IMG/VR virus record: IMGVR_UViG_3300042889_001503
Location: 124,001-188,000 of that record
Direction: 5' to 3' (one strand)
DNA length: 64,000 nucleotides
This document shows, in pieces, positions 32,900 to 64,000 of the stretch (within the stretch, counting starts at the first letter, position 1; each line of letters opens with the position of its first letter). Made by a program: the position numbers and the translations under genes. A model generated the notes under the pieces. That model saw only the letters and a program-made list of their open reading frames with translations. It was not told the DNA's origin and ran no database searches.

Positions 32900-33120
32900 T
32901 GATTACTGAAAGAACTTTTGATACAAATGATTTAAATTGGATTGCCAACTCATTAAAAGAAAATGTTGGGAGAATGAACTATACCGGTGACTTGAGTGAC
33001 TGTGGTAATGAGATTGGAATTATAGTTGGATATAAATATAAGAATATGACTGAAGATGAAACTCAAGATTTTATTTCAGGTATTAAACACGGAATTTCAT
33101 TAACAAATGGGACTCACTAA
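32899..33120 (+). CDS. Hypothetical protein
   Basis: TAATG coupling with the upstream gene. Confidence 0.6.
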   Translation: MITERTFDTNDLNWIANSLKENVGRMNYTGDLSDCGNEIGIIVGYKYKNMTEDETQDFISGIKHGISLTNGTH

Positions 33121-33130
33121 TAAAAAAAAT

Positions 33131-48276: not shown

Positions 48277-49197
48277 ATGGAAGATTTTTATCAAATATTA
48301 GGTGTTAACCAAAATGCCACACAGGACGAAATAAAGAAGGCTTATAGGAAGTTAGCTGTAGAACATCACCCGGATAAAGGTGGTGATGAAAATAAGTTTA
48401 AAAAGATTTCAGAGGCGTATGATACGATAGGCGACGAAAATAAACGAAGTCAATACGATAACCAAAAAAGAAACCCCTTTGCTAATATGGGTGGTGGTGG
48501 TGGAGGAGGATTTAATCCGTTTGAGGAGATGTTTAACCAAATGCACACTCAAAGAAAACGTGCTGTCCCGGATAAGATAATTGAGGTGGTTGTTAATGCT
48601 GTTGAATCTTTCTTGGGAGGTGAAAAAAACATTACATATGAGCGAAACCATAATTGTGGTGGGTGTAATGGAACAGGTGGTGAAAAAATAACTTGTTCTA
48701 CTTGTAATGGACAAGGAATGATTACTCAACAAATTGGAACCGGATTATTTACACAAATAATTAGAACACATTGTGGTAGTTGTAGTGGTAGAGGTTTTAC
48801 ATATAGAACAACTTGTGGTACTTGTCACGGAACCACAACAACATCCTCAAAGGAAACCATATCAATTAAATTACCACACGGAATTGATGAGGGTCAATTT
48901 TTAAGAGTTCAAGGTAAAGGAGATTTTAGAGATGGGATGTACGGTAATTTAGTAATTAAAGTTAACATTATCCCGGAAAATAATTTTGAAAAATCAATGG
49001 AGGATTTAATCTATAATGCTTATTTTGATTTAAATACTATTAAATTAGGTAGTGTTAAAGTTCCCCATCCTTTAGGGGACATTTCAATTAAACTACCACA
49101 GGAGTTTGACACGTCAAAACCATTACGAGTTAAAGGTAAAGGATATCACGGTAGAGGTGATTTATATATAAAACTATTTGTTAAGTTTAAAAGATAA
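48277..49197 (+). CDS. dnaJ: DnaJ chaperone (class A)
   Basis: J-domain HPD, G/F region, four CxxCxGxG-type motifs, C-terminal domain. Confidence 0.92.
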   Translation: MEDFYQILGVNQNATQDEIKKAYRKLAVEHHPDKGGDENKFKKISEAYDTIGDENKRSQYDNQKRNPFANMGGGGGGGFNPFEEMFNQMHTQRKRAVPDKIIEVVVNAVESFLGGEKNITYERNHNCGGCNGTGGEKITCSTCNGQGMITQQIGTGLFTQIIRTHCGSCSGRGFTYRTTCGTCHGTTTTSSKETISIKLPHGIDEGQFLRVQGKGDFRDGMYGNLVIKVNIIPENNFEKSMEDLIYNAYFDLNTIKLGSVKVPHPLGDISIKLPQEFDTSKPLRVKGKGYHGRGDLYIKLFVKFKR

Positions 49198-49531: not shown

Positions 49532-50380
49532 ATGGCATTATCATACATCGGGGGTAAATCAAAGATAGGTAAATGGATTGTTCCGTTTATACCTCAAGAC
49601 ATTGAAACATACGTGGAACCATTTTCAGGTATGTTTTGGGTATTCTTTAATATGGACTTATCCAAATACCCAAATCTAAAAGAAGTTGTCTACAATGACT
49701 TCAATCCACTTAACTACAATTTATTTCAGTGTCTTCAGAATCCTGAGAGATTATTGGAAGTTGTTAACTCAATTCCTTGTCAACAAAGAAATGAGTTTCC
49801 GACACCGGACATCTATAAAGAACAATTTATCAGGTTTCAGGCTGAAATATTTGAAACCAATTTCAGCGTACAGGCTTACGATTATGTAGTTGCGGCTAAA
49901 TACGCTTATGTGTTGGCTCAGGTATTCTCGGGCTCTAAACCTGAAACAAGTTCGTTTATTGACTTGAAAGGGAAATACAAATCAAAGTATCTAACATTCA
50001 GAGATAAGTTATCTAAACCTGATTGGGTGGAACATTTCTTAAAAATTACTAAGGTTGAGAATATGGACTTTGAAGAGGTTATTCAAAAGTATGATAACCC
50101 ATCTACATATGTTTATGCTGACCCACCATATTGGAAAACAGAGAACTATTATAACAACCACGACTTTGATAGTGCTGACCACGAGAGACTTGCAGATTGT
50201 TTAAAAGGTATTCAAGGGAAGTTCTCTTTATCTTACTATGATTTTCCTCAGTTACATACTTGGTTCCCTCAGACTCAATATGTGTGGGAAAAGAAAGAAT
50301 TTGCTAAGGCGGCTGCGGCTAAGAAAGGTAAGACTCAAAATATGGGGGAAGAACTTCTTATTATGAATTACCGAAAATAG
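49532..50380 (+). CDS. DNA adenine methyltransferase, Dam/D12 class
   Basis: YIGGK, EPFSG, YND, YADPPY. Confidence 0.9.
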   Translation: MALSYIGGKSKIGKWIVPFIPQDIETYVEPFSGMFWVFFNMDLSKYPNLKEVVYNDFNPLNYNLFQCLQNPERLLEVVNSIPCQQRNEFPTPDIYKEQFIRFQAEIFETNFSVQAYDYVVAAKYAYVLAQVFSGSKPETSSFIDLKGKYKSKYLTFRDKLSKPDWVEHFLKITKVENMDFEEVIQKYDNPSTYVYADPPYWKTENYYNNHDFDSADHERLADCLKGIQGKFSLSYYDFPQLHTWFPQTQYVWEKKEFAKAAAAKKGKTQNMGEELLIMNYRK

Positions 50381-50411
50381 TTTGGATAATTAAAAATATG
50401 TCTTATCTTTG
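50381..50411 (+). promoter_or_regulatory. Bacteroidota-type sigma70 promoter
   Basis: TTTG-19 nt-TATCTTTG. Confidence 0.75.
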
Positions 50412-50462
50412 TCCCGTTGAATAAAGAAAATAACGTTTGTTAGATTATTTACAAAAAACAAA

Positions 50463-50470
50463 TATTTATA
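50463..50470 (+). promoter_or_regulatory. TATTTATA motif
   Basis: 14 nt upstream of the ATG at 50485. Confidence 0.6.
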
Positions 50471-50484
50471 ATAAAAACAATTAA

Positions 50485-51882
50485 ATGAAGATTATCCAAG
50501 TACTTTCAAATTTAATAACTGAAGACGCTCGTTTTCAGGTATTTTATAATAAATATATACTACCTAGTGGTGATAGAAAAAAAGGATTACTTCCTTTTGA
50601 AATTGTTAAGCAAATAGTTTTTGCTGACCCAACAACAAGAGTTCCGGTTAACTATGACAAAAATGGTGCGTCCGTTGAAGATATGTTAAGTAATCAAATT
50701 AAGGTTGGGAAATATAGTCAATGGATGTTAAATATGTTTATTAAACCACATTTAACTAATGACAATAATGATGTTATAGAAGTTAATACTGACGAATATA
50801 AATCAAAGGCAAATCAATATAGAAAACTTTTTTTAGAAGATTTACATTACTTTACTGAATTACTAACAAAATTTGAAAGATTCAAAGGTAGTTTAGTAGA
50901 TGCGTCTAAGAAAGATATTAATAATGTTAAATCTATTAACGAATTATCTCAATTACAAGTTGAGTATGGTGATACAACAGTTGATTTGGCTGTGTATCGT
51001 GGTAAAAAAGTTAAAAACGAAAAAGGTGCTGACGTTAAAACAAACTTTAATTTTCCCGGTGCGGAAATATTAAAGGTTGGTTCAGAATATACCTTGATTA
51101 GAATTTCTGATAAAGGTGACTTAGGTTCTAAGGCGGCTTCTTATTTTGGAGGTTACGAAGGAGGATTAGCAAGAGGTGAGTCTAATTGGTGTACGGCAGC
51201 AACAGGTTCTGACCACTCACATAGATATAGACAAAAAGGTCCATTATATATTATTATGGCTAATGACGATAAAGGTAAAGTAGGTGAGGTAACAGGATTA
51301 CCTACAGAAAGATATCAACTTCACTTTCCAGCACCGAGTCAATTTAAATCTCGTGACCAATATTCTGCTGAGGGTAATGTCCCAATTGTTGAATTTTTAA
51401 ATGGTAAATGGAGTGAATTTAAAGAAATATTGAAACCTGAATTTGCTAAAGGGTTTGTTACACCAAATAGTGAAAACGTTAACATTAGATATCCATCTGA
51501 TGAAACAGGTAGATTTGTTGCGTTATATGGGTTTGAAGAATTATTTGAGGCGTTACCGGACACGATTAAAAAATTAAATATTGTTAACACTTCAAATGAA
51601 AACATTAGTGTAGCACTTCCTAAGTCAATTGTTAGGTTTAAATCGTTAGTGGCGGTGATGTTTCAGAATATGATTAGTTCAATTCCTGATAACATCTGTG
51701 AGTTGAAGAACTTGACGTTATTGGCTTTCCCTGATAATAAAGAATTAAAATCAGTTCCGGATTGTATACTGTCATTAAAAAACTTTACATTTTTAAATGT
51801 AAACGGATGTCCTAATGTTCAAGTACCAAAAGAATTGGAAAAATATAATGAAGGTAATGGTTATTACCATATGGAAGAATAG
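50485..51882 (+). CDS. LRR-containing protein, paralogue 1
   Basis: LITED leader; WCTA motif; C-terminal LP..I..L..L LRRs. Confidence 0.75.
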   Translation: MKIIQVLSNLITEDARFQVFYNKYILPSGDRKKGLLPFEIVKQIVFADPTTRVPVNYDKNGASVEDMLSNQIKVGKYSQWMLNMFIKPHLTNDNNDVIEVNTDEYKSKANQYRKLFLEDLHYFTELLTKFERFKGSLVDASKKDINNVKSINELSQLQVEYGDTTVDLAVYRGKKVKNEKGADVKTNFNFPGAEILKVGSEYTLIRISDKGDLGSKAASYFGGYEGGLARGESNWCTAATGSDHSHRYRQKGPLYIIMANDDKGKVGEVTGLPTERYQLHFPAPSQFKSRDQYSAEGNVPIVEFLNGKWSEFKEILKPEFAKGFVTPNSENVNIRYPSDETGRFVALYGFEELFEALPDTIKKLNIVNTSNENISVALPKSIVRFKSLVAVMFQNMISSIPDNICELKNLTLLAFPDNKELKSVPDCILSLKNFTFLNVNGCPNVQVPKELEKYNEGNGYYHMEE

Positions 51883-51892
51883 ATAAAGAAAA

Positions 51893-51900
51893 TATTTATA
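51893..51900 (+). promoter_or_regulatory. TATTTATA motif
   Basis: 17 nt upstream of the ATG at 51918; leader region duplicated with the gene. Confidence 0.6.
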
Positions 51901-51917
51901 ACAAAAAAACAATTAAA

Positions 51918-53309
51918 ATGAAGATTACAAAAGTATTATCGAACTTAGTTACTGAAGACGCTCGTTTTCAAATTTTATACAAAAAATATGTGTTACCTAG
52001 TGGTGATAGAAAAAAAGGTTTACTACCATTTGAGGTTGTTAAACAAATTGTTTTCGCTGACCCAACAACGAGAGTTCCTGAGAACTACGATAAGGAAGGT
52101 GCGTCTATTGAGGATATGACAAGTGACAAAATTAAAGTTGGTAAATATACCCAATGGTTGTTGAATCTATTTGTTAAACCATACATAACTAGAGAAGGTT
52201 CTAATGAACCAATTGAGGTTGGGACTGATGAGTATAAATCAAAGGCGACTGAATACAGACGACTTTTCTTAGAAGATTTATCTCAATTCACTGAATTATT
52301 AGTGAAATATGATAGATTTAAAGGTAGTTTAGAGGATGCCGCTAAAAAAGACATTAACAATGTTAAATCACTTAATGATTTATCTCACTTGAAAGTTAAA
52401 GTGGGTGATGAAACGGTTGATTTAAATATGTATCGTGGTAAAAAAATTAAGAAAGAAGAAGGTGTTGCTGCTAACACAAACTTTAATATTCCCGGAGCTG
52501 AAATTTTAAAAGTTGGTTCTGAATACACACTAATTAAAATTGCTGACAAAGGTGCTTTAGGTTCTAAAGCGGCATCTTATTTCGGTGGTTATAGTGGAGG
52601 ACTTGATAGAGGTGAAACTAACTGGTGTACGGCAGCAGAAAATTCAAGTTATTCAAACACTTACAGACAACAAGGTCCATTATATATCTTTATTGCTAAT
52701 GATGATAAAGGTAAGGTTGGTCAAGTTACGGGGTTACCATCAGAAAGATATCAATTCCACTTCCCATCTAACCAATTTAAATTTGCTAACCAACACGGTG
52801 GTAACATTCCGGTTGTTGAGTATTTGAATGGTAAATGGTCTGAGTTTAAAGAAATATTCAAACCTGAGTTTGCGGCTGGATTTGTTAAACCAAATTCTGA
52901 TAATGTTGAAATTAAATACCCGGACTCTGCTACAGGTAAGTTCGTGGCTTTATACGGATTTGATGAATTATTTACATCATTACCTATAACAATTAAAAGA
53001 TTGAACATTATTAACACTTCAACAGAAAGTGTTACAATTGATGTTCCTGAGTCAATCAGTAGATTCCAATCATTAACAGCAATATTGTTTGAGAATATGA
53101 TTAGTAAACTTCCAAACTCAATCTGTGAATTAAAGAACTTGGTGTTTATCGCTGTTCCGGGTAACAAAGAATTGAAAACAATTCCGGAATGTATTATGAA
53201 TTTACCAAACCTTACATTTGTGAATGTAAGTAGATGTCCTAATGTTCAAGTGCCAAAAGCGTTAGAACAATACAATACGGGTGAAGGTTTCTACCATATG
53301 GAAGAATAA
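51918..53309 (+). CDS. LRR-containing protein, paralogue 2
   Basis: End-to-end similar to 50485-51882. Confidence 0.75.
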   Translation: MKITKVLSNLVTEDARFQILYKKYVLPSGDRKKGLLPFEVVKQIVFADPTTRVPENYDKEGASIEDMTSDKIKVGKYTQWLLNLFVKPYITREGSNEPIEVGTDEYKSKATEYRRLFLEDLSQFTELLVKYDRFKGSLEDAAKKDINNVKSLNDLSHLKVKVGDETVDLNMYRGKKIKKEEGVAANTNFNIPGAEILKVGSEYTLIKIADKGALGSKAASYFGGYSGGLDRGETNWCTAAENSSYSNTYRQQGPLYIFIANDDKGKVGQVTGLPSERYQFHFPSNQFKFANQHGGNIPVVEYLNGKWSEFKEIFKPEFAAGFVKPNSDNVEIKYPDSATGKFVALYGFDELFTSLPITIKRLNIINTSTESVTIDVPESISRFQSLTAILFENMISKLPNSICELKNLVFIAVPGNKELKTIPECIMNLPNLTFVNVSRCPNVQVPKALEQYNTGEGFYHMEE

Positions 53310-53327
53310 TTTAAAAAAAATACTACT

Positions 53328-53618
53328 ATGAAAAATGTTGACGTTGAAATCTACATTAATCAATTTATAACTTTCTTTAATAACAACCCCAATGACTTAC
53401 TTGAGTTAATTGGGGATGTTTTGAAGGACGACTTCTACGACAGAGTTAAACAACAATCTTTGGATAATGTTAATAACGGTGAGGATGTTTCCTTAACCCA
53501 AAAACAAATTATATCTATTGTTGTGGCTCTTAAACAATCTCAAAATGATGAGGTTGATATGGATAAGATTAAGTCCATAATTTATCACACACAATTCGGA
53601 CATTTTTCCCTTAATTAA
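53328..53618 (+). CDS. Hypothetical protein
   Basis: ORF track. Confidence 0.6.
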   Translation: MKNVDVEIYINQFITFFNNNPNDLLELIGDVLKDDFYDRVKQQSLDNVNNGEDVSLTQKQIISIVVALKQSQNDEVDMDKIKSIIYHTQFGHFSLN

Positions 53619-53650
53619 TTTGTATATTCAAATTTAATATCTTACTTTTG
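53619..53650 (+). promoter_or_regulatory. Bacteroidota-type sigma70 promoter
   Basis: TTTG-20 nt-TACTTTTG upstream of ATG 53669. Confidence 0.75.
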
Positions 53651-53668
53651 TGGTTCAAAATAAACCTG

Positions 53669-55429
53669 ATGAAAGAAGAATTATTTAATTATACCGTAAA
53701 GAAATATCAAGTATCGGAATACTTGGATACCAATCCTATTCGACCTCTTAAAAAAGAGGTTCAGGATGATTTTTGGGGGGTAATTGAAACTACTATGAGT
53801 TCAACTAAAAACTCAAGTTATACGCCTTGGGGTGACTTTACTTTTAAGGAGGATTATGATACAGAAGAAAAATTTGTAGAACATTACGGGAACCCACTTA
53901 CTTCATTATATTTGAATAGGGTGATTATCTGTGTGACTAAAGAGAATGATAAAGTTTCCTTTAAGATATTCAATTACAGTAAAACAAGACGTGTTGCGGG
54001 TAAATGGTTTAAATTAAGAACTAATTGTAGGTTCATTACTTTTAACTATAAAACAAATGCGTTATATACCGGTTCATTAGATAATTACCATTTGAAGAGA
54101 AAATGTCGTAAAAATATTAGAAGAGTCCTTTTTAATAATGACCCTATCAATAATATGAGACGATATTTGAGAGAGTCATTCAACTCAATAGTTGATAAAG
54201 ATAAAGTTGATATCCCAACAATAGTTAATCAGGTTATCTCAACCTTTGTTAACGCCATTCCCGGAACTGAACTATACTCTGATTTACTTCCTGAACAAAG
54301 AATCTATAAAAGATATTTGGACGTTCAAGGAATTAAAGTCCCAAACAATTGGTTTGAGCTTATGAATGTTTATCCCCAACCAAAGAAGAAAGATTTGGTG
54401 AAGTGTGAGTATAAGTATATTGATGCTCTAATGAGGGTTCATAATTTAAAGGGGGATAAAGTTAAAAGGGTATTACATAACGTTAAATCATTTGAGGGTG
54501 TAAATAATTTAACCAATGCTTGTTCAATATTTGGAGATAAGTTTATTTTAAATCAACCGGACGAGTTTGTTCAATTGTTACTGGAGAAGTCTCAACCCGG
54601 ATTTCATAATAATATTGGAAAAGGATTGTTAACCAAAAAAGAATTCTCTAATTTCTTTGAAATATATAAATTATTTCAAAAAGGATTAGTTAATAATAAT
54701 GTGATTGAAGACCACTTTAGATTTTATCGTTTATTGGACGAAATGGAACCGGTTAAATGGACTTCAAGGACTCACGATGAGTTTGTTCAAGAACATTATG
54801 ATTGGTCGGAAAAATATAACCATTACACAAACGGAGATTTCAATAGAATTTACAACCGAGGGTTTGTAGATAAAATAAATGAGGTTATCTTAACCAAAGA
54901 TGGTCCATATTTCCCGGAGGTGTTAACAACATCCAAACGATATAACAACGAGTCGTTCTTCCAAAACAATTGTGTTAAGACATATGTTAAACGTGTGGGT
55001 TCTGTGTTGATATCACTAAGACGTGGTGAGGGAGAAACTGAAGAAAGAGCGTCAATTGAAATTGAAGTAACTCCGCTTGTGTGGCTGGATGAAATGTATT
55101 TTAATTTAAGACGAGTTCAAACCTTGGGAAAACGTAACAGTAGGTTAGATAATAGTTGGGATGATGTTTTGGGTAAATTAGATGATAGAATTGAATATAT
55201 TGTTCGTGAGAAATTGTTTGATACATTACAGATTGATGGTGAATTTGGGGGGAGAAAAGTGTTTTCTGATTATAAAATTGGGGAATATAGTAGAGACAAT
55301 TATGGTACTTTTCCAAATATAACAAAAGGGGTTCAATTAGAATGGGAAAACGATTCAATTATGAAATTAAATTCGTATAATTATAACATTGTTCCCGTCT
55401 TTAATGACCCGGACGCATTAGATTTTTAA
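53669..55429 (+). CDS. PcfJ-like domain protein
   Basis: C-terminal 'HYDW...ESFFQNNCVKTY...RASIEI...QTLGKRN' pattern. Confidence 0.65.
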   Translation: MKEELFNYTVKKYQVSEYLDTNPIRPLKKEVQDDFWGVIETTMSSTKNSSYTPWGDFTFKEDYDTEEKFVEHYGNPLTSLYLNRVIICVTKENDKVSFKIFNYSKTRRVAGKWFKLRTNCRFITFNYKTNALYTGSLDNYHLKRKCRKNIRRVLFNNDPINNMRRYLRESFNSIVDKDKVDIPTIVNQVISTFVNAIPGTELYSDLLPEQRIYKRYLDVQGIKVPNNWFELMNVYPQPKKKDLVKCEYKYIDALMRVHNLKGDKVKRVLHNVKSFEGVNNLTNACSIFGDKFILNQPDEFVQLLLEKSQPGFHNNIGKGLLTKKEFSNFFEIYKLFQKGLVNNNVIEDHFRFYRLLDEMEPVKWTSRTHDEFVQEHYDWSEKYNHYTNGDFNRIYNRGFVDKINEVILTKDGPYFPEVLTTSKRYNNESFFQNNCVKTYVKRVGSVLISLRRGEGETEERASIEIEVTPLVWLDEMYFNLRRVQTLGKRNSRLDNSWDDVLGKLDDRIEYIVREKLFDTLQIDGEFGGRKVFSDYKIGEYSRDNYGTFPNITKGVQLEWENDSIMKLNSYNYNIVPVFNDPDALDF

Positions 55430-55430
55430 A

Positions 55431-55754
55431 ATGAAAGAAATACCTCAAAATTGTATAGATACGTTTAAATCTAGGTTCTTAACACAACCAAGTATTATTG
55501 AAGTGTATCCAAACCTGTCTAATGAAGACACGGACAAATTATTAAATAAATCACTTTTATTATGGTTTGATTATTTTGTAAATAACGAACACGACATAGT
55601 TTATAAAGATAGATTATACGAATATGATGCTACGGGAATTTTAATTTTACGGAAGTCACAAACTAAGATATTTATTTTAACAAGAGTGGATAAACAAAAC
55701 GTAGTAGAGTATTTGTTACTACAACTAAAACGATTAACAACAAAAAAAGATTAA
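55431..55754 (+). CDS. Hypothetical protein
   Basis: ORF in operon. Confidence 0.6.
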   Translation: MKEIPQNCIDTFKSRFLTQPSIIEVYPNLSNEDTDKLLNKSLLLWFDYFVNNEHDIVYKDRLYEYDATGILILRKSQTKIFILTRVDKQNVVEYLLLQLKRLTTKKD

Positions 55755-55756
55755 GA

Positions 55757-56080
55757 ATGGAAATTACACAAGAATTATTACAGGAAAAAATTAACAATGG
55801 TGAAAAATTAGTGGTTGACTTTTGGGCTCCGTGGTGTGGACCTTGTAAAGTTATGAAACCCGCATTTGAAAAAGTTTCCGAACATTACAGAAATGAAAAT
55901 TCGGAAGTTCAGTTATTCACATTGAATGTTGAGGAAAACAAAGAATTTGCGGCTAAATTAGGTATTAGAGCAATCCCAACAGTTAAAACATTTTCTGAAG
56001 GTAAAGAAGTTTATTCTCAACCGGGAATGCAAATGGAAGGACAAATTAAACAATTGGTGACTAACCTAATCAATGGATAA
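55757..56080 (+). CDS. trxA: Thioredoxin
   Basis: VDFWAPWCGPCK, GIRAIPT. Confidence 0.92.
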   Translation: MEITQELLQEKINNGEKLVVDFWAPWCGPCKVMKPAFEKVSEHYRNENSEVQLFTLNVEENKEFAAKLGIRAIPTVKTFSEGKEVYSQPGMQMEGQIKQLVTNLING

Positions 56081-56360
56081 GTTACTAATTCTTTTCACAA
56101 TGGAAGGTTGTCCTTATTGTGATATGATGAAGGAACAACTAACGAAATCAAATATCCCATTTGAGGTTAGAGATATCGATGAACACAATGATGAATATGA
56201 GATGTTTGTTGAGATTACGGAAAATGAATTTGTTCCCGCATTTATGATTGTTGAATCACCTCTAACAGATAACCACAAGAGTTATCTGTTTGCTCCGGAA
56301 AGAGATTACAACGAGATTGAAGAAGGTGTTGCAATCATTAAAGAACATTTTGGAAAATAA
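56073..56360 (+). CDS. Glutaredoxin-like protein
   Basis: GCPYC, FVPAF cis-Pro loop. Confidence 0.85.
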   Translation: MDKLLILFTMEGCPYCDMMKEQLTKSNIPFEVRDIDEHNDEYEMFVEITENEFVPAFMIVESPLTDNHKSYLFAPERDYNEIEEGVAIIKEHFGK

Positions 56361-56389
56361 AGAATCCCCTTGATTGGGGGTTTTTTATT
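56358..56389 (+). terminator. Intrinsic terminator
   Basis: AATCCCC-ttgatt-GGGGGTT-TTTT. Confidence 0.8.
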
Positions 56390-56396
56390 TATGGGA

Positions 56397-56404
56397 TATT
56401 TATT
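56397..56404 (+). promoter_or_regulatory. TATTTATT motif
   Basis: 3 nt upstream of the ATG at 56408. Confidence 0.55.
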
Positions 56405-56407
56405 ATT

Positions 56408-56839
56408 ATGAAAATAGTAATTAAAGAATCTCAGTATAACTTTTTGGTTGAACAAACTACACCATCAACAACACCGGTTCCATTAAGTAGAGAAGAACAA
56501 ATTAAGTTAAATAAAGAAAAACTTGAACTTAAAAAGAAAGCTGCTGAGGAATTAAAACTTAAAACCATTCAAAAAAAGGATTCAATTGCAAAGGCTTGGG
56601 ATGAAAAAAGAGCTCCTGAATTAAAGAAAGCTGAAGAATTACATAAAAAATATCTTGATGCTTGGTTAGCTGCTAATCCGGGTAAAACGGAAAAAGATTA
56701 TAGTAAGTATTTGGAGAAACAAAAAAAATTACCTGATTCACCATCCTATGAAACTCAAGACCCATCATTCAAATCAACAAAATGTGGTGTTTCAAAAGCG
56801 GCGGCAAAACAATCTAAAAGTGATTGGTCTAAAAAATAA
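56408..56839 (+). CDS. Lys-rich protein with IKESQ..LVEQ leader
   Basis: MKIVIKESQYNFLVEQ; self-contained between terminators. Confidence 0.65.
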   Translation: MKIVIKESQYNFLVEQTTPSTTPVPLSREEQIKLNKEKLELKKKAAEELKLKTIQKKDSIAKAWDEKRAPELKKAEELHKKYLDAWLAANPGKTEKDYSKYLEKQKKLPDSPSYETQDPSFKSTKCGVSKAAAKQSKSDWSKK

Positions 56840-56866
56840 AAAATCCCCAAGTTAGGGGATTTTATT
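56838..56866. terminator. Bidirectional intrinsic terminator
   Basis: AAAATCCCC-aagtta-GGGGATTTT between converging genes. Confidence 0.85.
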
Positions 56867-56867
56867 T

Positions 56868-57686
56868 TTAAAATAATATTAGGTCTTTAATTTTATCTCT
56901 AATTAACCAAGGTTTATTATCAAATGGTTTTGTTATGTCTTCCATAATATCATAATCTTTTATCATATCATTGAATACCAACATATCAAAATCAAACACG
57001 TCCAATGTCATTGAGATAATATCTTTTTTAGGAAACACCGTGTTAGCATTAATGTCTATTTGATTATCGTCGTCCACTTTAATGGACGAATATTTGAAAG
57101 TTAACTTATCTGTTAACAGAACATCTAATAACTGATTAGAGATGTATTCTGAGTAGTATAACTCTTGTCTTCCCATACCTAAACTATATCCGTGTGGAAA
57201 CTCTGATGAGATATTCAACGGAGCATAAGTATAATATTCCAAATTGGTAGTGTCGTCTTCAGAATAATCTAATTCATATTCCAATCTTCTATTATAAAAA
57301 ACTGAATTAAATTTAGGTTGAGGATTTTCAACAATATCTAAAATAAGATTACGGTGATATAACGGTCTTGATGAATGATAAAAATCAAACGTGTATTCTG
57401 TTTTTTTAGTTAAGTCTCGATTATACATAATTAAATCAATAATGTTAACCGTCTCATAACCAAATTTAGTCATTAAAGATTTATAGGTTTCAACAAATGA
57501 CTCTCTTACTTTAATTATATCTAAAATTTTATCTGATGTTGTCATACCGTTAACAACAAAGAATTTACCACAATCAGTAACTTCAATTACGGAGTCATAA
57601 TTAATTGTTTTATTTATCTCTTTTATTAAAAAGTCTGCGAATAGGTTTACTATACCCCGGTTTGAATTTTCATTAATATATTTCAT
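56868..57686 (-). CDS. Degenerate S-adenosylmethionine synthetase (MetK)-like protein
   Basis: By-eye colinearity with the MetK N-terminal and C-terminal domains; catalytic motifs lost (see findings). Confidence 0.6.
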   Translation of the reverse strand: MKYINENSNRGIVNLFADFLIKEINKTINYDSVIEVTDCGKFFVVNGMTTSDKILDIIKVRESFVETYKSLMTKFGYETVNIIDLIMYNRDLTKKTEYTFDFYHSSRPLYHRNLILDIVENPQPKFNSVFYNRRLEYELDYSEDDTTNLEYYTYAPLNISSEFPHGYSLGMGRQELYYSEYISNQLLDVLLTDKLTFKYSSIKVDDDNQIDINANTVFPKKDIISMTLDVFDFDMLVFNDMIKDYDIMEDITKPFDNKPWLIRDKIKDLILF

Positions 57687-57734
57687 ATTTTTAAGTTATA
57701 CGAAATGATATAGAAATTAATTCTAATTATAAAT

Positions 57735-57760
57735 AAAAAAAGGGAACTAAATTGTCCCCT
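57735..57760 (-). terminator. Intrinsic terminator for the 57940 gene
   Basis: Minus strand AGGGGAC-aatttag-TTCCCT-TTTTTT (imperfect stem). Confidence 0.6.
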
Positions 57761-57790
57761 GTAATTTTTTTCACCCCTAACGTTTAGTTA

Positions 57791-57940
57791 CTACCTCTTG
57801 TAATATTTCTCAACAACTTTACGAATTGATTCTTGGATAGGTTGAGTCTGTGGTTGACTTTGACCCGCAGGAGTATTCGTTTGTTGAGCTGGTGGTGGTG
57901 GAGGAGTTTGATTTCCTTGGTTTTTACATCCGCATCCCAT
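57791..57940 (-). CDS. Small MGCGCK protein (49 aa)
   Basis: ATG 57940 in the 57991 ORF; P/Q-rich linker; TATTTATG at 57970-57977 upstream. Confidence 0.6.
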   Translation of the reverse strand: MGCGCKNQGNQTPPPPPAQQTNTPAGQSQPQTQPIQESIRKVVEKYYKR

Positions 57941-58022
57941 GATAATATATGTATTAAAGTTTATATATCCATAAATATCAATAATAATCATAATAAGTAA
58001 ATAAATTTTGTATCTTCGTGGA

Positions 58023-58030
58023 TATTTATT
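58023..58030 (+). promoter_or_regulatory. TATTTATT motif
   Basis: 3 nt upstream of the ATG at 58034. Confidence 0.55.
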
Positions 58031-58033
58031 ACT

Positions 58034-59401
58034 ATGGGTAGAAAATTAAGACTTACAGAATCCGAATTATATAAAGTAATCAAAAAAATAGTTGAGCAAA
58101 CTGAGGACGAATATTATAGAATATCTCCTGAGGATTACTTGGATATGATGCAATATGCCAGTTATAATGGTAATGTGTTTAGAAAAATGAAAAAATATGG
58201 TGGAAAACCATTATATATTACAGGTGATTTAGATTTAAGCGGTTTACCGGTTAAAGACATTGGACCAATAGGTTATGTTGACGGTAGATTTGATATTAGC
58301 AGAACTAAAGTATCCGATATTGGTAATTTAAGAAGTAAGTCACATATTTGGGATTCGGGGTCTCCTCGAGAAAGAATTAGAGAAAAACAAGAACTTTTGG
58401 GTAAACAAGCTGAGATGGACTCCAAACGAGAAGATGATGAATGGAATTTTCAAAATCACGATGAAGAGGGATTAAAGGCTATGGCTTTATTAGAATATCT
58501 TGAGGGTCAAGGTAAAGTTAAAGTATTGGATAATGATGAGAAAGAAGAGTTAAAAGAATTGACTCAACAATTGGAAGAACTTAATGCCGATTATGATGAT
58601 GAAGATAGAGACGGTGACCCGGATGAGAATGTGGAAATATTAAATAAAATTGAAGAAGTTCAAGAAAGAATTGATGATTTAACTGGTGACGTTGGTGACA
58701 TCTATGATATGTATCCAACAAATTATACTCATTATGGTTTGACTCAATTTGAAGTTTTGGTGGATGGTTTTAAAGGTGAAGAATATACTGTTGGAACTGA
58801 GGAAGAAATGGATAGAGCGGCTTTAGAGTATTCTAAAAATTATATTGATGATGTTGGAGCTGATGGGTTTAGTAAAAGTTTTATTGAGGATTATTTGGAT
58901 GAAGATGCAATTGTTGACTTTGCAAGAGAAGATTATGAATATCAAGTAAGAGATAGTCCGGAAAGTTATTTTAATGATGATGATTTTGAATTGACTTCAG
59001 AACAAGAAGAAAGAATAGAACAGATTGAATCTCAAATTGAGGATTTGGAACAACAAAAACTTGAATTAGATTCAGATGATGAAAATTATTATGACTACGA
59101 AGAGGATTTAGATAATCAGATTGAATCTCTTCAAGAAGAGTTAGACAATATTGAGGTTGATACTGACCCAACTGAGGATATGATTGATAATAAAGTTGAA
59201 GAATTAGTTAGGTGGGTTAAACGAGACCCTATGCAATATCTTAATGATTACGGTATGGACGTTAAAGAATATATTGATGGAGATGCTTTAGCTCAAGGGT
59301 TAGTTGATTCTGATGGGTGGGGTATTATGAACAGTTATGACGGTACTTATGACAGTATTGATATAGGTGGTGAGTCTTATTACGTAATGAGAGTTAACTA
59401 A
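58034..59401 (+). CDS. Highly acidic protein with LTESEL leader, short LRR-like segment and acidic coiled coils
   Basis: MGRKLRLTESELYKVIKKIVEQ; GDLDLSG..VDGRFDISRT; D/E-rich C-terminal two-thirds. Confidence 0.7.
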   Translation: MGRKLRLTESELYKVIKKIVEQTEDEYYRISPEDYLDMMQYASYNGNVFRKMKKYGGKPLYITGDLDLSGLPVKDIGPIGYVDGRFDISRTKVSDIGNLRSKSHIWDSGSPRERIREKQELLGKQAEMDSKREDDEWNFQNHDEEGLKAMALLEYLEGQGKVKVLDNDEKEELKELTQQLEELNADYDDEDRDGDPDENVEILNKIEEVQERIDDLTGDVGDIYDMYPTNYTHYGLTQFEVLVDGFKGEEYTVGTEEEMDRAALEYSKNYIDDVGADGFSKSFIEDYLDEDAIVDFAREDYEYQVRDSPESYFNDDDFELTSEQEERIEQIESQIEDLEQQKLELDSDDENYYDYEEDLDNQIESLQEELDNIEVDTDPTEDMIDNKVEELVRWVKRDPMQYLNDYGMDVKEYIDGDALAQGLVDSDGWGIMNSYDGTYDSIDIGGESYYVMRVN

Positions 59402-59429
59402 AACTATTCCTTTTTCCAATCTTTTCCTG

Positions 59430-59437
59430 TATATTTG
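59430..59437 (+). promoter_or_regulatory. Possible -7 element TATATTTG (no clear -33)
   Basis: 12 nt upstream of ATG 59450. Confidence 0.45.
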
Positions 59438-59449
59438 AAATAATAGAAT

Positions 59450-60217
59450 ATGGAAATGAGACAGAAAAATAAGAATAAATTTATAATGGACACGGATTGG
59501 TTGTTTGACGGTATTTTAGATGCTGAACAAAAACAATACGTGTTATTAGATTACTTTCAAAAGATGAACAAACATCTTGAGAGAATGGAGGTCTACCCAA
59601 TGTTTATTGAGCTTTCATTACATTTAGGTAATATACAAACTTTACTAACCCAAAACAAAATCTTATATGTTGATAAAAAATTAACATCTACTGATGATGA
59701 ATTGGTATTAAACGATTTAAAGGTTAGGGACATCCCGGTACTTGACGATGAAGAAGTAATTGAATATCAAAAAATATTAAAAAATAGTCAACCACAATTA
59801 CACGACTATTTCAACTTTGCAAAATCAATATGGAGTATTGTTTATGATTCCATAGATATTGTTGTAAAGAAAAATAAAAACAATCTACAAAGTAAATCAG
59901 GTTTTTTTTCATATAAGACACCGGAAATTTTATATGTTTGGCAATATACTACAAGAAAAGTCTATAAAACTAAAAACCAAACAAAAACATCTTTAAAATT
60001 AATTTTTAAAGGTCAACAAGATGATTTGACTATCCCGGAAATTATCTCTACTTTTTCAAAAACATACGAGAAAAACAATGAAGTTGGTTATCCAATCTTT
60101 GAGGTGTTTTGTAGTGATATATTTCCATTAGAGCAGACTTTAGTTCCAATCTTTAAAAGAAAAATATTATCGTATGTCAATCAAAACGTTATTATAACAA
60201 GAAAATTAATATCATAA
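59450..60217 (+). CDS. Hypothetical protein
   Basis: 255 aa ORF. Confidence 0.65.
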   Translation: MEMRQKNKNKFIMDTDWLFDGILDAEQKQYVLLDYFQKMNKHLERMEVYPMFIELSLHLGNIQTLLTQNKILYVDKKLTSTDDELVLNDLKVRDIPVLDDEEVIEYQKILKNSQPQLHDYFNFAKSIWSIVYDSIDIVVKKNKNNLQSKSGFFSYKTPEILYVWQYTTRKVYKTKNQTKTSLKLIFKGQQDDLTIPEIISTFSKTYEKNNEVGYPIFEVFCSDIFPLEQTLVPIFKRKILSYVNQNVIITRKLIS

Positions 60218-60399
60218 TGGACAAGAAACAAATTAAAAATTTGATGGATAAGTTAAGACAACCAATCCATATTAGTTACATCTCAAAATACATTCTTAAA
60301 CAGAGTATTGATGAGTCACAAAAACAATTAGATGTATTAATCTCAGAAGGATATATTCAGAAAAGTTCACTAAGTGATGGTTACTATGTGGCTATCTAA
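60217..60399 (+). CDS. Small protein, possible winged helix
   Basis: PIHISYIS..L......LDVLISEGYI...GYYV pattern. Confidence 0.5.
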   Translation: MDKKQIKNLMDKLRQPIHISYISKYILKQSIDESQKQLDVLISEGYIQKSSLSDGYYVAI

Positions 60400-60607
60400 A
60401 AAAACTTATCACATTGGTATTGGGTGTAGTCAAACGGTAATTAGAATATTTAAACAATCAATATTGTTTAGTAAATCACCATCAGGTTGGTCACTTAGGA
60501 TTAATGATGGGGTTGGTATTAATGTTACCACAAAACCACTCTTTTCGGTTAGAAATGGGTATAAAAAATCCATTAAATTGGGTAGATATTATTTAGTAAA
60601 ATTATGA
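60374..60607 (+). CDS. Small hypothetical protein
   Basis: Operon packing; start may be 60386. Confidence 0.5.
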   Translation: MMVTMWLSKKTYHIGIGCSQTVIRIFKQSILFSKSPSGWSLRINDGVGINVTTKPLFSVRNGYKKSIKLGRYYLVKL

Positions 60608-60990
60608 ACGAATTATTTAAATCAATTGAACCTCTGTTTAAAAATAGGTTCACTATAAATGTTAATGAGGATGTTAACATTCCGGAATATCTGTTCCGTA
60701 AATTCCATATTGAAAATATTGGTGAGGATTTTATTTTTACAACAGAAATTTATCAAACCGTGGAATACACATTTAACCCATCTGATTTGACAAAAATTAC
60801 GGATATCATTCTTAAATTTTTAGGTCCGGTTGGTGATTTAGTTGGAGGGTTACATATGTTAGTTAAAGGTTCCAATATGGAAATCGAGGGTGATTATGGT
60901 GATGGTGAATTATTAATTGTTAAATTTAGATTTGTTGTTAAACCGGTAGATATTAACCTATTATGTCAAGATATTAAGAAAGATGAATAA
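60604..60990 (+). CDS. Hypothetical protein, possibly a shortened tail-tube (gp19-like) paralogue
   Basis: EP..NRF, IPEY, DIILKFLGPVG..V, DYG...L pattern. Confidence 0.45.
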   Translation: MNELFKSIEPLFKNRFTINVNEDVNIPEYLFRKFHIENIGEDFIFTTEIYQTVEYTFNPSDLTKITDIILKFLGPVGDLVGGLHMLVKGSNMEIEGDYGDGELLIVKFRFVVKPVDINLLCQDIKKDE

Positions 60991-61216
60991 AGAAATGGTG
61001 AACCACCCGGAACATTACGGAGGTCAGGACAATCCTTATGAGGTTGTAAAAGTTTGTGAAGCTTGGGGTCTTGATAAAGACGCTTACATCTTCAACGTTG
61101 TTAAATATGTTGCAAGAGCGGGTAAGAAAGATACCGATAAAGAACTTCAGGATATGAAGAAAGCGTTGTGGTATTTAAATCGTAAAATTGAAAGATTAGA
61201 AAGTGGAAATCAATAA
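60983..61216 (+). CDS. DUF3310 family protein
   Basis: VNHPEHY, NVVKYVARAGKK, DMKKALWYL. Confidence 0.88.
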   Translation: MNKEMVNHPEHYGGQDNPYEVVKVCEAWGLDKDAYIFNVVKYVARAGKKDTDKELQDMKKALWYLNRKIERLESGNQ

Positions 61217-61370
61217 AGAATATATTGAATCAATAATAGGACTTGAAATTGATGATTTCAAAGTAGAGGAATTAATAGACGACGAAGACATTATAAATGT
61301 TAAAGTTAAACCTAAGGTATTACCCAAATATATTAACATTTCAATAAAAATAGATAAAGTAGATGTATAA
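61203..61370 (+). CDS. Small hypothetical protein (55 aa, GTG start, not in ORF track)
   Basis: VEINKEYIESIIGLEIDDFKVEEL...IKIDKVDV fills the gap and overlaps both neighbours. Confidence 0.5.
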   Translation: MEINKEYIESIIGLEIDDFKVEELIDDEDIINVKVKPKVLPKYINISIKIDKVDV

Positions 61371-61668
61371 AGTAACAGTAGATATTGACCAATACGCGGA
61401 AGGTGCGATTTTATTGGATGGTTTAGAGAGTGCAATTATTGGTATTGTTGAGGACTTTGGTTCTCCGGGAAGAAAGATATTATATTCAAAACGAGAGATA
61501 TTAAACATCTTACAAGAAAGAGACTTAATGACTATGGGTGAAGCGGAAGAGTTTTACGATTATAATATATTAGGATTATATGCTGGTGAACAGAACGCAG
61601 TGTTTTTAGACCAAGGTTTAGAACCAATTAAAAATGAAGAAAACGAGTGGGAATACCACGTAAAATAA
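61363..61668 (+). CDS. Phage hypothetical protein
   Basis: 'LDGLESAIIG...YS...EAEEFYDYNILGLYAGE', a pattern recalled from many phages. Confidence 0.65.
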   Translation: MYKVTVDIDQYAEGAILLDGLESAIIGIVEDFGSPGRKILYSKREILNILQERDLMTMGEAEEFYDYNILGLYAGEQNAVFLDQGLEPIKNEENEWEYHVK

Positions 61669-61672
61669 TAAA

Positions 61673-62533
61673 ATGATAGAAACAGGAAAGATAATTAATG
61701 GAGATTGTATTGAGGTAATGAAAACATTTCCTGAAGGTTCAATTGATTTACTAGTAACATCACCACCATATAATGTAAACATTTCGTATGATGTTCATAA
61801 GGATGATTTACCAATGGAGGAATATTACGAGTGGTCAAAGGATTGGTTGAGAGAGGCGTTCCGAGTATTAAAAGATGATGGTCGAATTGCTGTGAATGTC
61901 CCAAATGAATTGAATGTCCAAGAAAGAGGTGGGAGAATATTATTCGTTGCCGAGTTTTGGATGTTAATGAAAGAAGTTGGGTTTAAATTTAGTGGGTTAG
62001 TCGACCTTACGGAAGATAGTCCACATAGAGTTCGACAAACGGCTTGGGGTTCTTGGATGAGTGCGTCAGCACCTTATATCTATAATCCTAAAGAGTGTAT
62101 CATATTGGCTTATAAGAAAAGTAGTAAAAAATTAACTAAAGGAGTTTCACAATGGATGGGAATATCAACTGAGGTTACTACTGAAGATGGTAAGGTTAAA
62201 AACAAAATGATTTATCAGGACGAAGATAAAAAAGAATTTATGAATTTGGTGTTTGGTAGATGGGAATATTTTGCGGATACTAGGTCATTAACTAAAGCCA
62301 CATTCTCAATGGACATTCCATCAAAGGCGATTAAGATATTGTCTTATAAAAATGATATTGTTCTTGACCCTTTTATGGGAAGTGGGACTTCAGCTTTTGC
62401 GGCTGAGTTATTAGATAGACGATGGATTGGAATTGAGTTATCTCCGGATTATACAGAAATTGCAAGGAAAAGAGTTCAATCATTAATTGATGAACGAAAA
62501 CAAACAAAATTAGAATTAAAAGAAGAGGTGTAA
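61673..62533 (+). CDS. Site-specific DNA methyltransferase, N4/N6 family beta class (SPPY suggests m4C)
   Basis: GDC, VTSPPYN, VLDPFMGSGT, IGIEL. Confidence 0.9.
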   Translation: MIETGKIINGDCIEVMKTFPEGSIDLLVTSPPYNVNISYDVHKDDLPMEEYYEWSKDWLREAFRVLKDDGRIAVNVPNELNVQERGGRILFVAEFWMLMKEVGFKFSGLVDLTEDSPHRVRQTAWGSWMSASAPYIYNPKECIILAYKKSSKKLTKGVSQWMGISTEVTTEDGKVKNKMIYQDEDKKEFMNLVFGRWEYFADTRSLTKATFSMDIPSKAIKILSYKNDIVLDPFMGSGTSAFAAELLDRRWIGIELSPDYTEIARKRVQSLIDERKQTKLELKEEV

Positions 62534-62549
62534 TAACCTCTTTTTTATT
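62523..62549 (+). terminator. Intrinsic terminator
   Basis: AAGAGGT-gtaata-ACCTCTT-TTTT. Confidence 0.75.
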
Positions 62550-62556
62550 TTCTGTA

Positions 62557-62564
62557 TATTTATA
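62557..62564 (+). promoter_or_regulatory. TATTTATA motif
   Basis: 15 nt upstream of the ATG at 62580. Confidence 0.6.
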
Positions 62565-62579
62565 ACTAAAACAATTACT

Positions 62580-62936
62580 ATGGCAAAAAGATTTATAATT
62601 TCGGAAGATGAAAAAAGAGATATCCGTTCAAGATATGGTTTAGTTAATGAACAAAATGATGGTTTTGAACTTAAAAAAGGGATACAATGTTTCCTTAACA
62701 AAAAAGGTTATAAAGATGATGCGAATCAACCATTAAAAGTTGACGGATTACTAGCGGGTAAAACAGCGGAAGCTTTAAGTAAATATCAATCTAAGATTGG
62801 TGTTACCGCAGATGGTGTTTGGGGTCCTGAAACACAAAATAAAATGTCTGATAAAGACGTTCAACTTTTTAAACAATGTGTATCCGATGAAGGTAGTTTC
62901 ATTGATAAAGGTTTACATATGTTTGGTTTAGATTAA
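62580..62936 (+). CDS. Peptidoglycan-binding domain protein with ISEDEK..LVNEQ leader
   Basis: IQCFLN..GY..L.VDG..G.KT..AL..YQ..IG..ADGVWGPET (PG_binding_1). Confidence 0.8.
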   Translation: MAKRFIISEDEKRDIRSRYGLVNEQNDGFELKKGIQCFLNKKGYKDDANQPLKVDGLLAGKTAEALSKYQSKIGVTADGVWGPETQNKMSDKDVQLFKQCVSDEGSFIDKGLHMFGLD

Positions 62937-64000
62937 TGAAAAAACTTATAAAAGAAAGTGGATTAAGAGACATTAACGCTCTTGCTAAAAGATACCCTAA
63001 AGCTGAAATATATTTTCACCAAGATTTAGATGGTGTAACTACGGCTATTGCGATGAAAGAATATCTTAAGAATAATGGTATTGATGTAATAGATTCTCAT
63101 ATCATCCAATATGGTGATAAAGAGTTCGCTGTAAAGAAGAATGACGCTAAAGGGGACGTGATGCCTGTTTTAGTTGATTTTGCTCACGGAAAACCAATGT
63201 TTGTGATTCACACAGACCACCACGATAGACAAGCCGGAGCTGAAGACACTAAATCAACATCATTTAGAAGTTCCCGTTCAAATGTTGAGACAATCTCTCA
63301 GGTAGTTTCTCCAAAAGAATTATTCCCATCCTCAGACATATTACTTATTTCTACTGTAGATTCTGCAAACTATGCGGTTAACGATATTTCAGTGGACCAA
63401 GTAATCTCTTACTTATTCAGATTAGATAAAGAGAAATCGTTAGAAAAGAATAAAATGTTAATGGGGTTAGTTGTTAACAAACTATTATTAGCGTTTAAAA
63501 ACAAACCAGGGTTCTTAGAGACATTGGTTATGGAATGTTCTCCATCGTTATTAAATATACTTCACACCATTAAACGAATAATGGTTGAGAAAGGATACGC
63601 GAAACCGGACCAACTTGAAAAGAATAAAGAAGACTATGTCACATCAATGCAAACTAACCCTAATGTTAAAGTATTAGGTAATGTTATTGTTCAATATGGT
63701 GGGGGTTCAATGTTTAAGCCAGGTTCTTACGATAGATACACACCATTCAAAAATAATCCTGAGGCTGACTTTATTGTTATTGCTTGGCCGTTAGGGTTAG
63801 TTCAAGCGTCTTGTAACCCATTCAAAGGAGAACGTCAATTAAAAGGTGTGAATTTAGGTGAGATTGCCCAAGAGGTATTATCAAAATGGGAGGACCAATT
63901 AAAACAAAGAGAGATAACCCTTTCAACAATTAAATGGATTTCAGAATCATCAAAAGATTTTAATTCGGAATCAACAGGATTTACCTTTAAAGATTTTGTT
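62936..64000 (+). CDS. DHH-family phosphoesterase (3' truncated; not in ORF track)
   Basis: MKKLIKES...FHQDLDG...LVDFAH...HTDHHD...SRSN...STVDSA; open to the window end. Confidence 0.8.
   Translation, partial: MKKLIKESGLRDINALAKRYPKAEIYFHQDLDGVTTAIAMKEYLKNNGIDVIDSHIIQYGDKEFAVKKNDAKGDVMPVLVDFAHGKPMFVIHTDHHDRQAGAEDTKSTSFRSSRSNVETISQVVSPKELFPSSDILLISTVDSANYAVNDISVDQVISYLFRLDKEKSLEKNKMLMGLVVNKLLLAFKNKPGFLETLVMECSPSLLNILHTIKRIMVEKGYAKPDQLEKNKEDYVTSMQTNPNVKVLGNVIVQYGGGSMFKPGSYDRYTPFKNNPEADFIVIAWPLGLVQASCNPFKGERQLKGVNLGEIAQEVLSKWEDQLKQREITLSTIKWISESSKDFNSESTGFTFKDFV

Follow-up and report, generated by a model that had tools for sequence, protein, structure and literature searches.

The window analysed here is a 64,000-nucleotide stretch (positions 124,001 to 188,000) of the 272-kb IMG/VR virus record IMGVR_UViG_3300042889_001503. 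On its minus strand, a coding sequence at 56868..57686 encodes a 272-aa protein related to MetK, the S-adenosylmethionine (SAM) synthetase of the methionine adenosyltransferase (MAT) superfamily. Translation of the window gave an ATG start, no internal stops and a stop codon at 56868-56870, in line with an earlier sequence-only reading of this DNA, which had recorded an intact 272-aa frame, aligned both of its ends by eye with MetK and proposed a catalytically dead mimic of that enzyme.

Terminator-like hairpins lie on both sides of the gene. A scan for terminators placed one just past the stop codon (56840..56863; 9 pairs followed by T runs), where it is bidirectional and common to the convergent plus-strand gene at 56408-56839, and another on the minus strand at 57741..57760, where it separates the start codon from an upstream 66-aa open reading frame (ORF); in the region as a whole, five such sites were seen against 0.5 expected. 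Because these hairpins flank the gene, they suggest that it is a monocistronic unit. No Rfam riboswitch or leader was matched near the gene, including at the hairpin at 57741..57760, and sigma-70-like promoter matches around it were no more frequent than expected by chance.

An AlphaFold2 model of the 272-aa protein, computed from an alignment of 82 family members that was also used for the profile searches below, has a predicted local distance difference test (pLDDT) score of 95.3 and a predicted TM-score (pTM) of 0.92. It contains the three β-α-β-β-α-β repeats of the MAT fold, with the middle repeat reduced. Searching the PDB with this model using Foldseek returned 152 matches at E ≤ 1e-3, of which the top 50 were all MATs, from bacteria, mycobacteria and human, with alignments covering almost the whole target at 10-12% sequence identity (best match E = 4.2e-12, probability 1.00; TMq 0.64-0.67 for MATs). 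The sole match in the viral structure library was one uncharacterised 208-aa phage protein.

Sequence profiles pointed to the same enzymes. Single-sequence searches with the 272-aa protein found nothing in Pfam, PHROGs or PDB sequences and nothing useful in the ESM Atlas. Searching all PDB sequences with the profile of the 82 members (hmmsearch) gave ten matches, all ten of them SAM synthetases, in two collinear blocks pairing family residues 12-85 with MetK ~46-121 and residues 156-220 with MetK ~270-336. We also ran hhalign in local mode against a control set, an alignment of 63 MetK sequences built from viral MetK loci, and obtained the C-terminal block (query residues 170-247 with MetK 270-350) at E = 1.1e-4 and the N-terminal block at E = 0.14. 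The Pfam domain S-AdoMet_synt_C (PF02773) was matched by 10 of the 82 members, best by the relative P0131 (E = 4.3e-5, 23.9 bits against a gathering cutoff of 25), which in the same register also matches the NCBIfam metK model TIGR01034 (E = 8e-5, 21.7 bits against a cutoff of 309.4). In the C repeat, the Pfam and NCBIfam matches of these relatives share their register with the PDB profile alignments. None of the 82 members matched PF02772, the MetK central domain, and the window protein itself had no MAT match in Pfam or NCBIfam, lying below every curated cutoff.

Thus hmmsearch, hhalign and Pfam all reproduce the by-eye alignment to the two ends of MetK, which was right in essence, and the Foldseek result decisively bears out the MetK fold that the sequence-only reading had proposed to look for. 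Two details call for minor correction. At the triphosphate loop, the tool alignment is offset by one residue, placing R173 at MetK R273 and Y177 at Y277, and for helix 1 different members give two registers, one helical turn apart. One relative, the 232-aa P0209 (L123:542-1240 and L124:1791-2489, both with the glutaredoxin-thioredoxin synteny described below), starts with MKIEGHTDK, in which EGHTDK is aligned to EGHPDK of MetK; this is the only such relic among 269 family proteins, and P0209 may stem from a lineage in which an ancestral trait of MetK survived. A profile search of a large protein database returned only close relatives among the matches listed, with no intermediates between MetK and the family visible. 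Because the Foldseek E value of 4e-12 is joined by collinear MetK-specific sequence matches, chance resemblance to MATs is refuted, and we conclude with high confidence that the 272-aa protein is a true, divergent MetK/MAT homologue with the MAT fold.

Lost catalytic residues and a new conserved motif

Although it shares the MAT fold, the family is not CATALYTICALLY equipped. In a motif scan, the MetK signatures GHPDK, GAGDQG, DxGxTGRK and GGGAFSGKD were each found in 0 of 269 family proteins, and likewise the cores TGRK, GDQG and FSGKD, whereas each signature was present in 59-63 of the 63 control MetKs (GHPDK in 59, DxGxTGRK in 63 and GGGAFSGKD in 61). The absence of GHPDK, GAGDQG and GGGAFSGKD, first noticed in the window protein alone, thus extends to all 269 family proteins. 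The His, Asp and Lys of GHPDK are ligands of ATP and Mg2+ in MetK; at this position the window protein has YINEN or SNRG, depending on which of the two helix 1 registers is used.

The same loss was seen column by column. Of 72 MetK columns conserved at 95% or more, 30 have an aligned family column and 5 of these have the same majority residue. The clear retained columns, G55/G47, F263/F163, R273/R173 and Y277/Y177 (MetK/family), read as structural anchors in the alignment, and a C-terminal Pro-Trp is also aligned between MetK and the family protein. The alignable charged MetK positions (E56, K266, D267, K270 and D272) are replaced: K266 corresponds to G166, a Gly in 99% of the family, D272 to G172, which is mostly Gly, and K270 and E56 to variable positions. 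For MetK residues D119, K166, D239, R245 and K246, the surrounding regions have no family counterpart, and the MetK-invariant columns from 117 to 253 have no aligned family column. In established MetK enzymology, these residues bind ATP or triphosphate, Mg2+ or K+, and methionine. Because they are lost, the 272-aa protein is almost certainly unable to make SAM by the MAT mechanism and serves some other purpose.

At 272 aa, against 384 in E. coli MetK, the protein is also short by some 110 aa, as had been noted before, and the missing length is in the middle. Residues 1-95 (57402..57686, minus strand) form the N-terminal β-α-β-β-α-β repeat, homologous to the MetK N domain by the model and the collinear profile matches, and residues 158-272 (56871..57215, minus strand) form the C-terminal repeat, whose homology to the MetK C domain (PF02773) is shown by hhalign, HMMER and the Pfam and NCBIfam matches of relatives. 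Between them, residues 96-157 (57216..57401, minus strand) make up a reduced and variable central repeat of 62 aa, where MetK has a domain of ~120 aa containing GAGDQG and K166. The mean top-residue frequency is 0.25 in this repeat, compared with 0.46 and 0.44 in the flanking ones, at an occupancy of 0.78, and ~230-aa relatives lack most of it. In the AlphaFold2 model, the central repeat retains strands 97-103, 128-132, 134-139 and 152-154 and one helix only. The sequence-only reading had been right to locate the shortening mid-protein, and its central domain 'apparently deleted or replaced' can be made more precise: strands persist, and the domain is reduced, to about half, rather than cleanly deleted.

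What the family conserves is a signature of its own. Its best-conserved motif, residues 161-173 (SEFPHGYSLGMGR; 57168..57206, minus strand), occupies the place of the MetK triphosphate loop and follows the pattern S161-x-F-P-x-G-x-S...G-R, with S161 in 99% of members, F163 in 91%, P164 in 100%, G166 in 99%, S168 in 87% and R173 in 87%. Beyond this motif, the conserved residues of the C repeat are Y177/Y178, S225, D229 (98%) and F231-D232-F233, with a moderately conserved K-P-W-L near the C terminus, and those of the N repeat are N14 (94%), D18, F42, G47 (100%), T49, F64, D84 (88%), I86 and Y88, with D84, I86 and Y88 on one face of strand 81-87. The median isoelectric point (pI) of the family, 4.9, is close to that of MetK, 5.2, and a reading of the protein as an Ocr-like DNA mimic was rejected for this reason.

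Compared with MetK (EC 2.5.1.6; PF00438/PF02772/PF02773; TIGR01034; for example, the E. coli enzyme or that of Ureaplasma, PDB 6rka), the family thus has the overall three-repeat fold and collinear N and C repeats in common but is shorter (272 versus ~384 aa), with the central domain halved and variable, the four motifs gone and the Lys and Asp residues of the triphosphate loop replaced. Fold and homology place it in the MAT structural superfamily, whereas curated cutoffs, motifs and the central domain all place it outside the MetK enzyme family. Viruses also encode full-length MetK genes as auxiliary metabolic genes, which are likewise members of the MAT superfamily; our scan of IMG/VR turned up 126 stretches that encode MetK, the longest of their contigs being 330 kb. 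These viral MetKs are full length, 46-84% identical to E. coli MetK and keep all motifs, unlike the family described here, which is 10-12% identical to MATs and has none of them. None of the 80 MetK contigs listed, of the 126 stretches, carries a member of the family.

A fixed-position core gene of uncultured jumbo phages

The ratio of nonsynonymous to synonymous substitution rates (dN/dS) of the MetK-like gene had a median of 0.10 over 166 pairs (range 0.045-0.16 in a first run), and the frame was intact in 29 close-relative loci from IMG/VR. This ratio is below that of most neighbours (thioredoxin 0.22, a 593-aa gene 0.22 and an acidic 455-aa gene 0.30) and similar to that of glutaredoxin (0.12). 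The gene is therefore under strong purifying selection and functional, and decay is refuted by the low ratio together with the intact frames; the comparison across related phages suggested by the sequence-only reading gave no sign of relaxed selection. With a MAT fold, lost catalytic residues, an intact frame and this degree of constraint, its description of the protein as a pseudo-enzyme or repurposed fold is well supported.

The MetK-like gene lies tail-to-tail with a glutaredoxin-like gene (56073-56360) and a thioredoxin gene (55757-56080), and this junction was found in all eight lineages compared (P0121, P0150, P0224, P0249, P0208, P0200, P0430 and P0209), at 24-46% identity. In one locus, L122 (43% identity, on a 299-kb contig), a whole region of ~20 kb is collinear with the window, including the genes for DnaJ (48277-49197), a D12-class, Dam-like DNA methyltransferase (49532-50380), a leucine-rich-repeat protein, a 570-aa protein, thioredoxin, glutaredoxin and an N6_N4 DNA methyltransferase (61673-62533). 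Because the entire region is collinear, we read the adjacency to glutaredoxin-thioredoxin as deep genome synteny, and the fixed junction is weak evidence for a functional link to the redox proteins. The two DNA methyltransferases are those that the sequence-only reading had attributed to the phage; a canonical MetK is not encoded in the 64-kb window. Like the fold, the standing of the MetK-like gene as a core gene that keeps its position across a large clade of uncultured jumbo phages is, in our view, firmly established.

The family is sizeable: a single-sequence search gave 386 clusters at 90% identity and a profile search at least 603, and exhaustive phmmer gave 191 representatives at the 50% identity level. 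Its members are all ~220-277 aa long, with none of MetK length; those named in any source are always called 'hypothetical protein', and no Pfam, PHROG or NCBIfam family covers them. They are confined to uncultured viral contigs, of 272-318 kb in IMG/VR and up to 505 kb elsewhere, and among deposited genomes similarity was limited to unannotated 'uncultured phage' records 484-735 kb in size, with 23-25% identity at the protein level. A tblastn search of 50,697 deposited phage genomes, with the window protein and three of its divergent relatives as queries, found no member of the family, the window DNA from 50000 to 64000 had no match in the phage genome collection, and no close relative was found in cellular genomes of 185,579 species. 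A Flavobacterium or Bacteroides host, as suggested by the sequence-only reading, found no support: the Bacteroidota -7 promoter motif is not enriched in the window (98 found versus 106 expected), the window has no tRNA gene and no relative was found in the cellular genomes searched. Full-text literature searches, outside which many subscription-journal papers lie, returned no description of a MAT pseudo-enzyme or MetK-like phage protein, nor, in phages or elsewhere, of any MAT-fold protein that occurs naturally and widely in a truncated, non-catalytic form. We conclude that this is a new, non-catalytic and reduced family within the MAT fold, so far restricted to uncultured jumbo phages.

Candidate functions of the MetK-like protein

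The best overall explanation, in which our confidence is evenly balanced, is that the protein serves as a non-catalytic MAT-fold binding module that would use the remodelled face of the former active site. By alignment, the conserved clusters map to the inter-subunit active-site elements of MetK, namely the start of helix 1 (N14/D18), strand 3 (G47/T49), the end of strand 4 (D84/I86/Y88) and the triphosphate loop (S161-R173), and we favour a binding module because the best-conserved elements of the family coincide in this way with those lining the active-site face between MetK subunits. In a more specific form, which we consider plausible but somewhat less probable, the protein would be a self-dimer with a new ligand or partner: it would pair in the manner of MetK dimers, by way of the old flat-sheet face, and the remodelled inter-subunit cleft would present the site for that ligand or partner. 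Several points weigh against a binding module. The clustering on the old active-site face is drawn from the alignment and from strand periodicity; the near-invariant polar residues N14, S161, S225 and D229 could be purely structural, for example holding a loop, rather than ligand-binding; and no co-transcribed partner offers a clue, as the gene looks monocistronic and upX, a gene found upstream of it in other lineages, has no recognisable fold and is missing from the window clade. Moreover, loss of the MetK ligand-binding residues would be compatible with a different catalytic chemistry.

Such a chemistry would make the protein a new enzyme, with an active site formed on the MAT scaffold by S161, S168, R173, Y177/Y178, N14, D84, Y88, D229 and D232 and acting, by another reaction, on a nucleotide or metabolite. 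The near-invariance of polar residues (N14 94%, S161 99%, D229 98%, D84 88% and R173 87%), the very strong constraint and the position of the conserved motif exactly in the former triphosphate loop are consistent with this idea, but no His, Cys, Lys or Glu is conserved in the family, nothing resembling a metal-binding constellation is seen, its invariant positions are mostly Gly, Pro and Phe and hence structural, and Pfam, NCBIfam, PDB and Foldseek offer no related enzyme family except MAT, so that we consider a new enzyme improbable. Less probable again is an accessory of the adjacent thioredoxin-glutaredoxin redox module, acting for instance in nucleotide reduction. The tail-to-tail arrangement does persist in 8/8 lineages, down to ~24% identity, but the genes are convergent and not co-transcribed, general synteny over ~20 kb at 43% identity in L122 explains their adjacency, and the family is without a conserved Cys. 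As for a residual SAM synthetase with unusual residues, a chance or convergent likeness, or a decaying remnant, nothing beyond the shared fold speaks for any of them, and we give them very little credence: all four signature motifs are missing in 269/269 proteins and the best TIGR01034 score is 21.7 against 309.4 bits, the structural and collinear sequence matches argue against chance, and the selection data and the 29 intact loci argue against decay.

The sequence-only reading had proposed an action on the host enzyme, and this we consider unlikely. Here, the MetK-like protein would pair with host MetK through the flat-sheet face, so that the shared active sites lose half their residues, SAM synthesis falls and type I restriction–modification and bacteriophage exclusion (BREX) systems, for which SAM is already known to matter, are disarmed; alternatively, host MetK would be re-tuned to feed the phage's two DNA methyltransferases. 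In its favour, the protein and MetK share a fold down to the sheet-forming strands of each of the three repeats, and family-conserved residues occupy positions equivalent to the MetK inter-subunit site. There is also a precedent, in that the SAM lyase of phage T3 (T3 SAMase) binds and inhibits host MetK (bioRxiv 10.1101/2023.02.27.530186). PDB 8bb1, listed with that precedent, appears among our Foldseek matches. The gene sits between two SAM-dependent DNA methyltransferase genes in both the window and L122, and a dN/dS of 0.10 would fit a very conserved target.

Other observations speak against a poison or modulator of host MetK. Interface residues should be preserved in a subunit mimic, but only 5 of the 30 alignable MetK-invariant columns, which we take to include loops lining the MetK dimer interface, are kept, at 10-12% identity. 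The central repeat, which is part of the MetK sheet, is dispensable in the ~230-aa relatives, and SAM depletion would starve the phage's own two methyltransferases. Accessory anti-defence genes tend, with no strict rule, to be patchily distributed in variable islands and to evolve fast, whereas this is a core gene with a fixed position in 8/8 lineages and a low dN/dS. PADLOC gave no match at E ≤ 1 for the window protein and four diverse relatives, and no anti-defence family was matched. On these grounds, a dominant-negative MetK poison or anti-defence protein is slightly disfavoured.

With T3 SAMase, the likeness is at most a possible functional analogy, that of a phage protein disturbing SAM supply through contact with MetK; T3 SAMase is an active enzyme of unrelated fold and sequence, and the MetK-like protein has the fold of a MAT and no match to a SAM lyase family in Pfam or PHROGs. 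The AdoMetDC 'prozyme' of trypanosomatids offers a parallel in concept, being a catalytically dead paralogue that keeps its fold and acts by oligomerising with its active relative. Prozyme-type paralogues retain clear similarity and interface residues, unlike the MetK-like family, which is near the detection limit in its resemblance to MetK.

MAT is among the most conserved enzymes known, and this new family of its superfamily demonstrates that the fold can survive reduction or even loss of the central MAT domain. The MetK-like protein is a concrete candidate for viral manipulation of SAM metabolism. A core pseudo-MAT of jumbo phages that forms mixed oligomers with host SAM synthetase and so controls SAM supply, whether by shut-down against defences or by re-tuning, remains a doubtful proposition; in the unlikely event that it holds, this would be the first virus to deploy an inactive version of a central metabolic enzyme as a poisoning or regulatory subunit. 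Even with no relation to SAM, the protein would still be a clean example of a viral pseudo-enzyme with a ligand or partner to discover.

Other genes of the window and of related loci

Between the glutaredoxin-like and MetK-like genes, a Lys-rich 143-aa ORF with a pI of 9.5 is wedged at 56408-56839 on the plus strand. It is present in only five close-relative loci, with a dN/dS of ~0.65, and is not at the equivalent spot in distant lineages; it has the look of a variable element inserted where the junction is otherwise fixed. On the other side of the MetK-like gene, the 66-aa ORF as listed (57791..57991, minus strand) is small and conserved, with a homologue at L113:6594-6749 (37% identity, E = 5e-8) and an equivalent 53-aa gene in L122. 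Because these homologues are shorter, at 51-53 aa, its true start is probably an internal Met. Its product is Pro/Gln-rich and basic, with a pI of 9.1. Divergently transcribed beside this cassette, a plus-strand gene at 58034-59401 encodes a 455-aa protein with a pI of 4.06 and a net charge of about -78. Homologues of this acidic protein are present at all 30 of the family loci that were matched in IMG/VR and also in L113 and L122, and it has no family match above threshold; a role as DNA mimic or as acidic scaffold is conceivable.

In five divergent lineages, a different gene, upX (340-428 aa), immediately precedes the MetK-like gene on its strand (L113:6821-7951, L116:43-1077, L120:1-1287, L121:2-631 and L122:8098-9120). 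We found 961 homologues of upX but no Pfam, PDB or Foldseek match, its AlphaFold2 model was of moderate quality (pLDDT 75.6), and it was not found in the window or its clade. As a partner of the MetK-like protein it was rejected, being unrelated to MetK and to the family, without a recognisable fold and missing from the window clade. In L122 only, a 275-aa gene with an HExxH motif (HEIMH) lies between upX and the MetK-like gene (L122:9120-9947); with this motif, no relationship to the family and its restriction to one lineage, it was rejected as a tandem paralogue.

Further from the MetK-like gene, two tandem paralogues of ~465 aa with weak C-terminal leucine-rich-repeat matches lie on the plus strand at 50485-51882 and 51918-53309, and a leucine-rich-repeat gene is found at the equivalent place in L122 and L123. 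The window also encodes SbcC (36672-39038), a Metallophos phosphoesterase (33107-33919), a DnaG-like primase and, on the plus strand at 39675-40475, a sigma-70 family factor with regions 1.2, 2 and 4. The presence of the latter suggests that the phage redirects host RNA polymerase with a promoter specificity of its own, and this may explain the uninformative outcome of the sigma-70 consensus scan around the MetK-like gene. From 1 to 31000, the window is occupied by a run of very large ORFs of up to 1884 aa (1346-7000), which looks like a structural module; these large ORFs had no Pfam match and a single PHROG match, to a family of unknown function. Also encoded there, a 728-aa protein (27303-29489) shares 25% identity with a protein from two uncultured phages of 735 kb, LR756501 and LR756503. 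In the relatives, a glutamine synthetase gene (Gln-synt_N, Gln-synt_C) lies a few kb from the MetK-like gene (L113:3218-4339 and L122:3764-4891), in neighbourhoods that also carry NUDIX, DUF932 and a weak SET-domain match.

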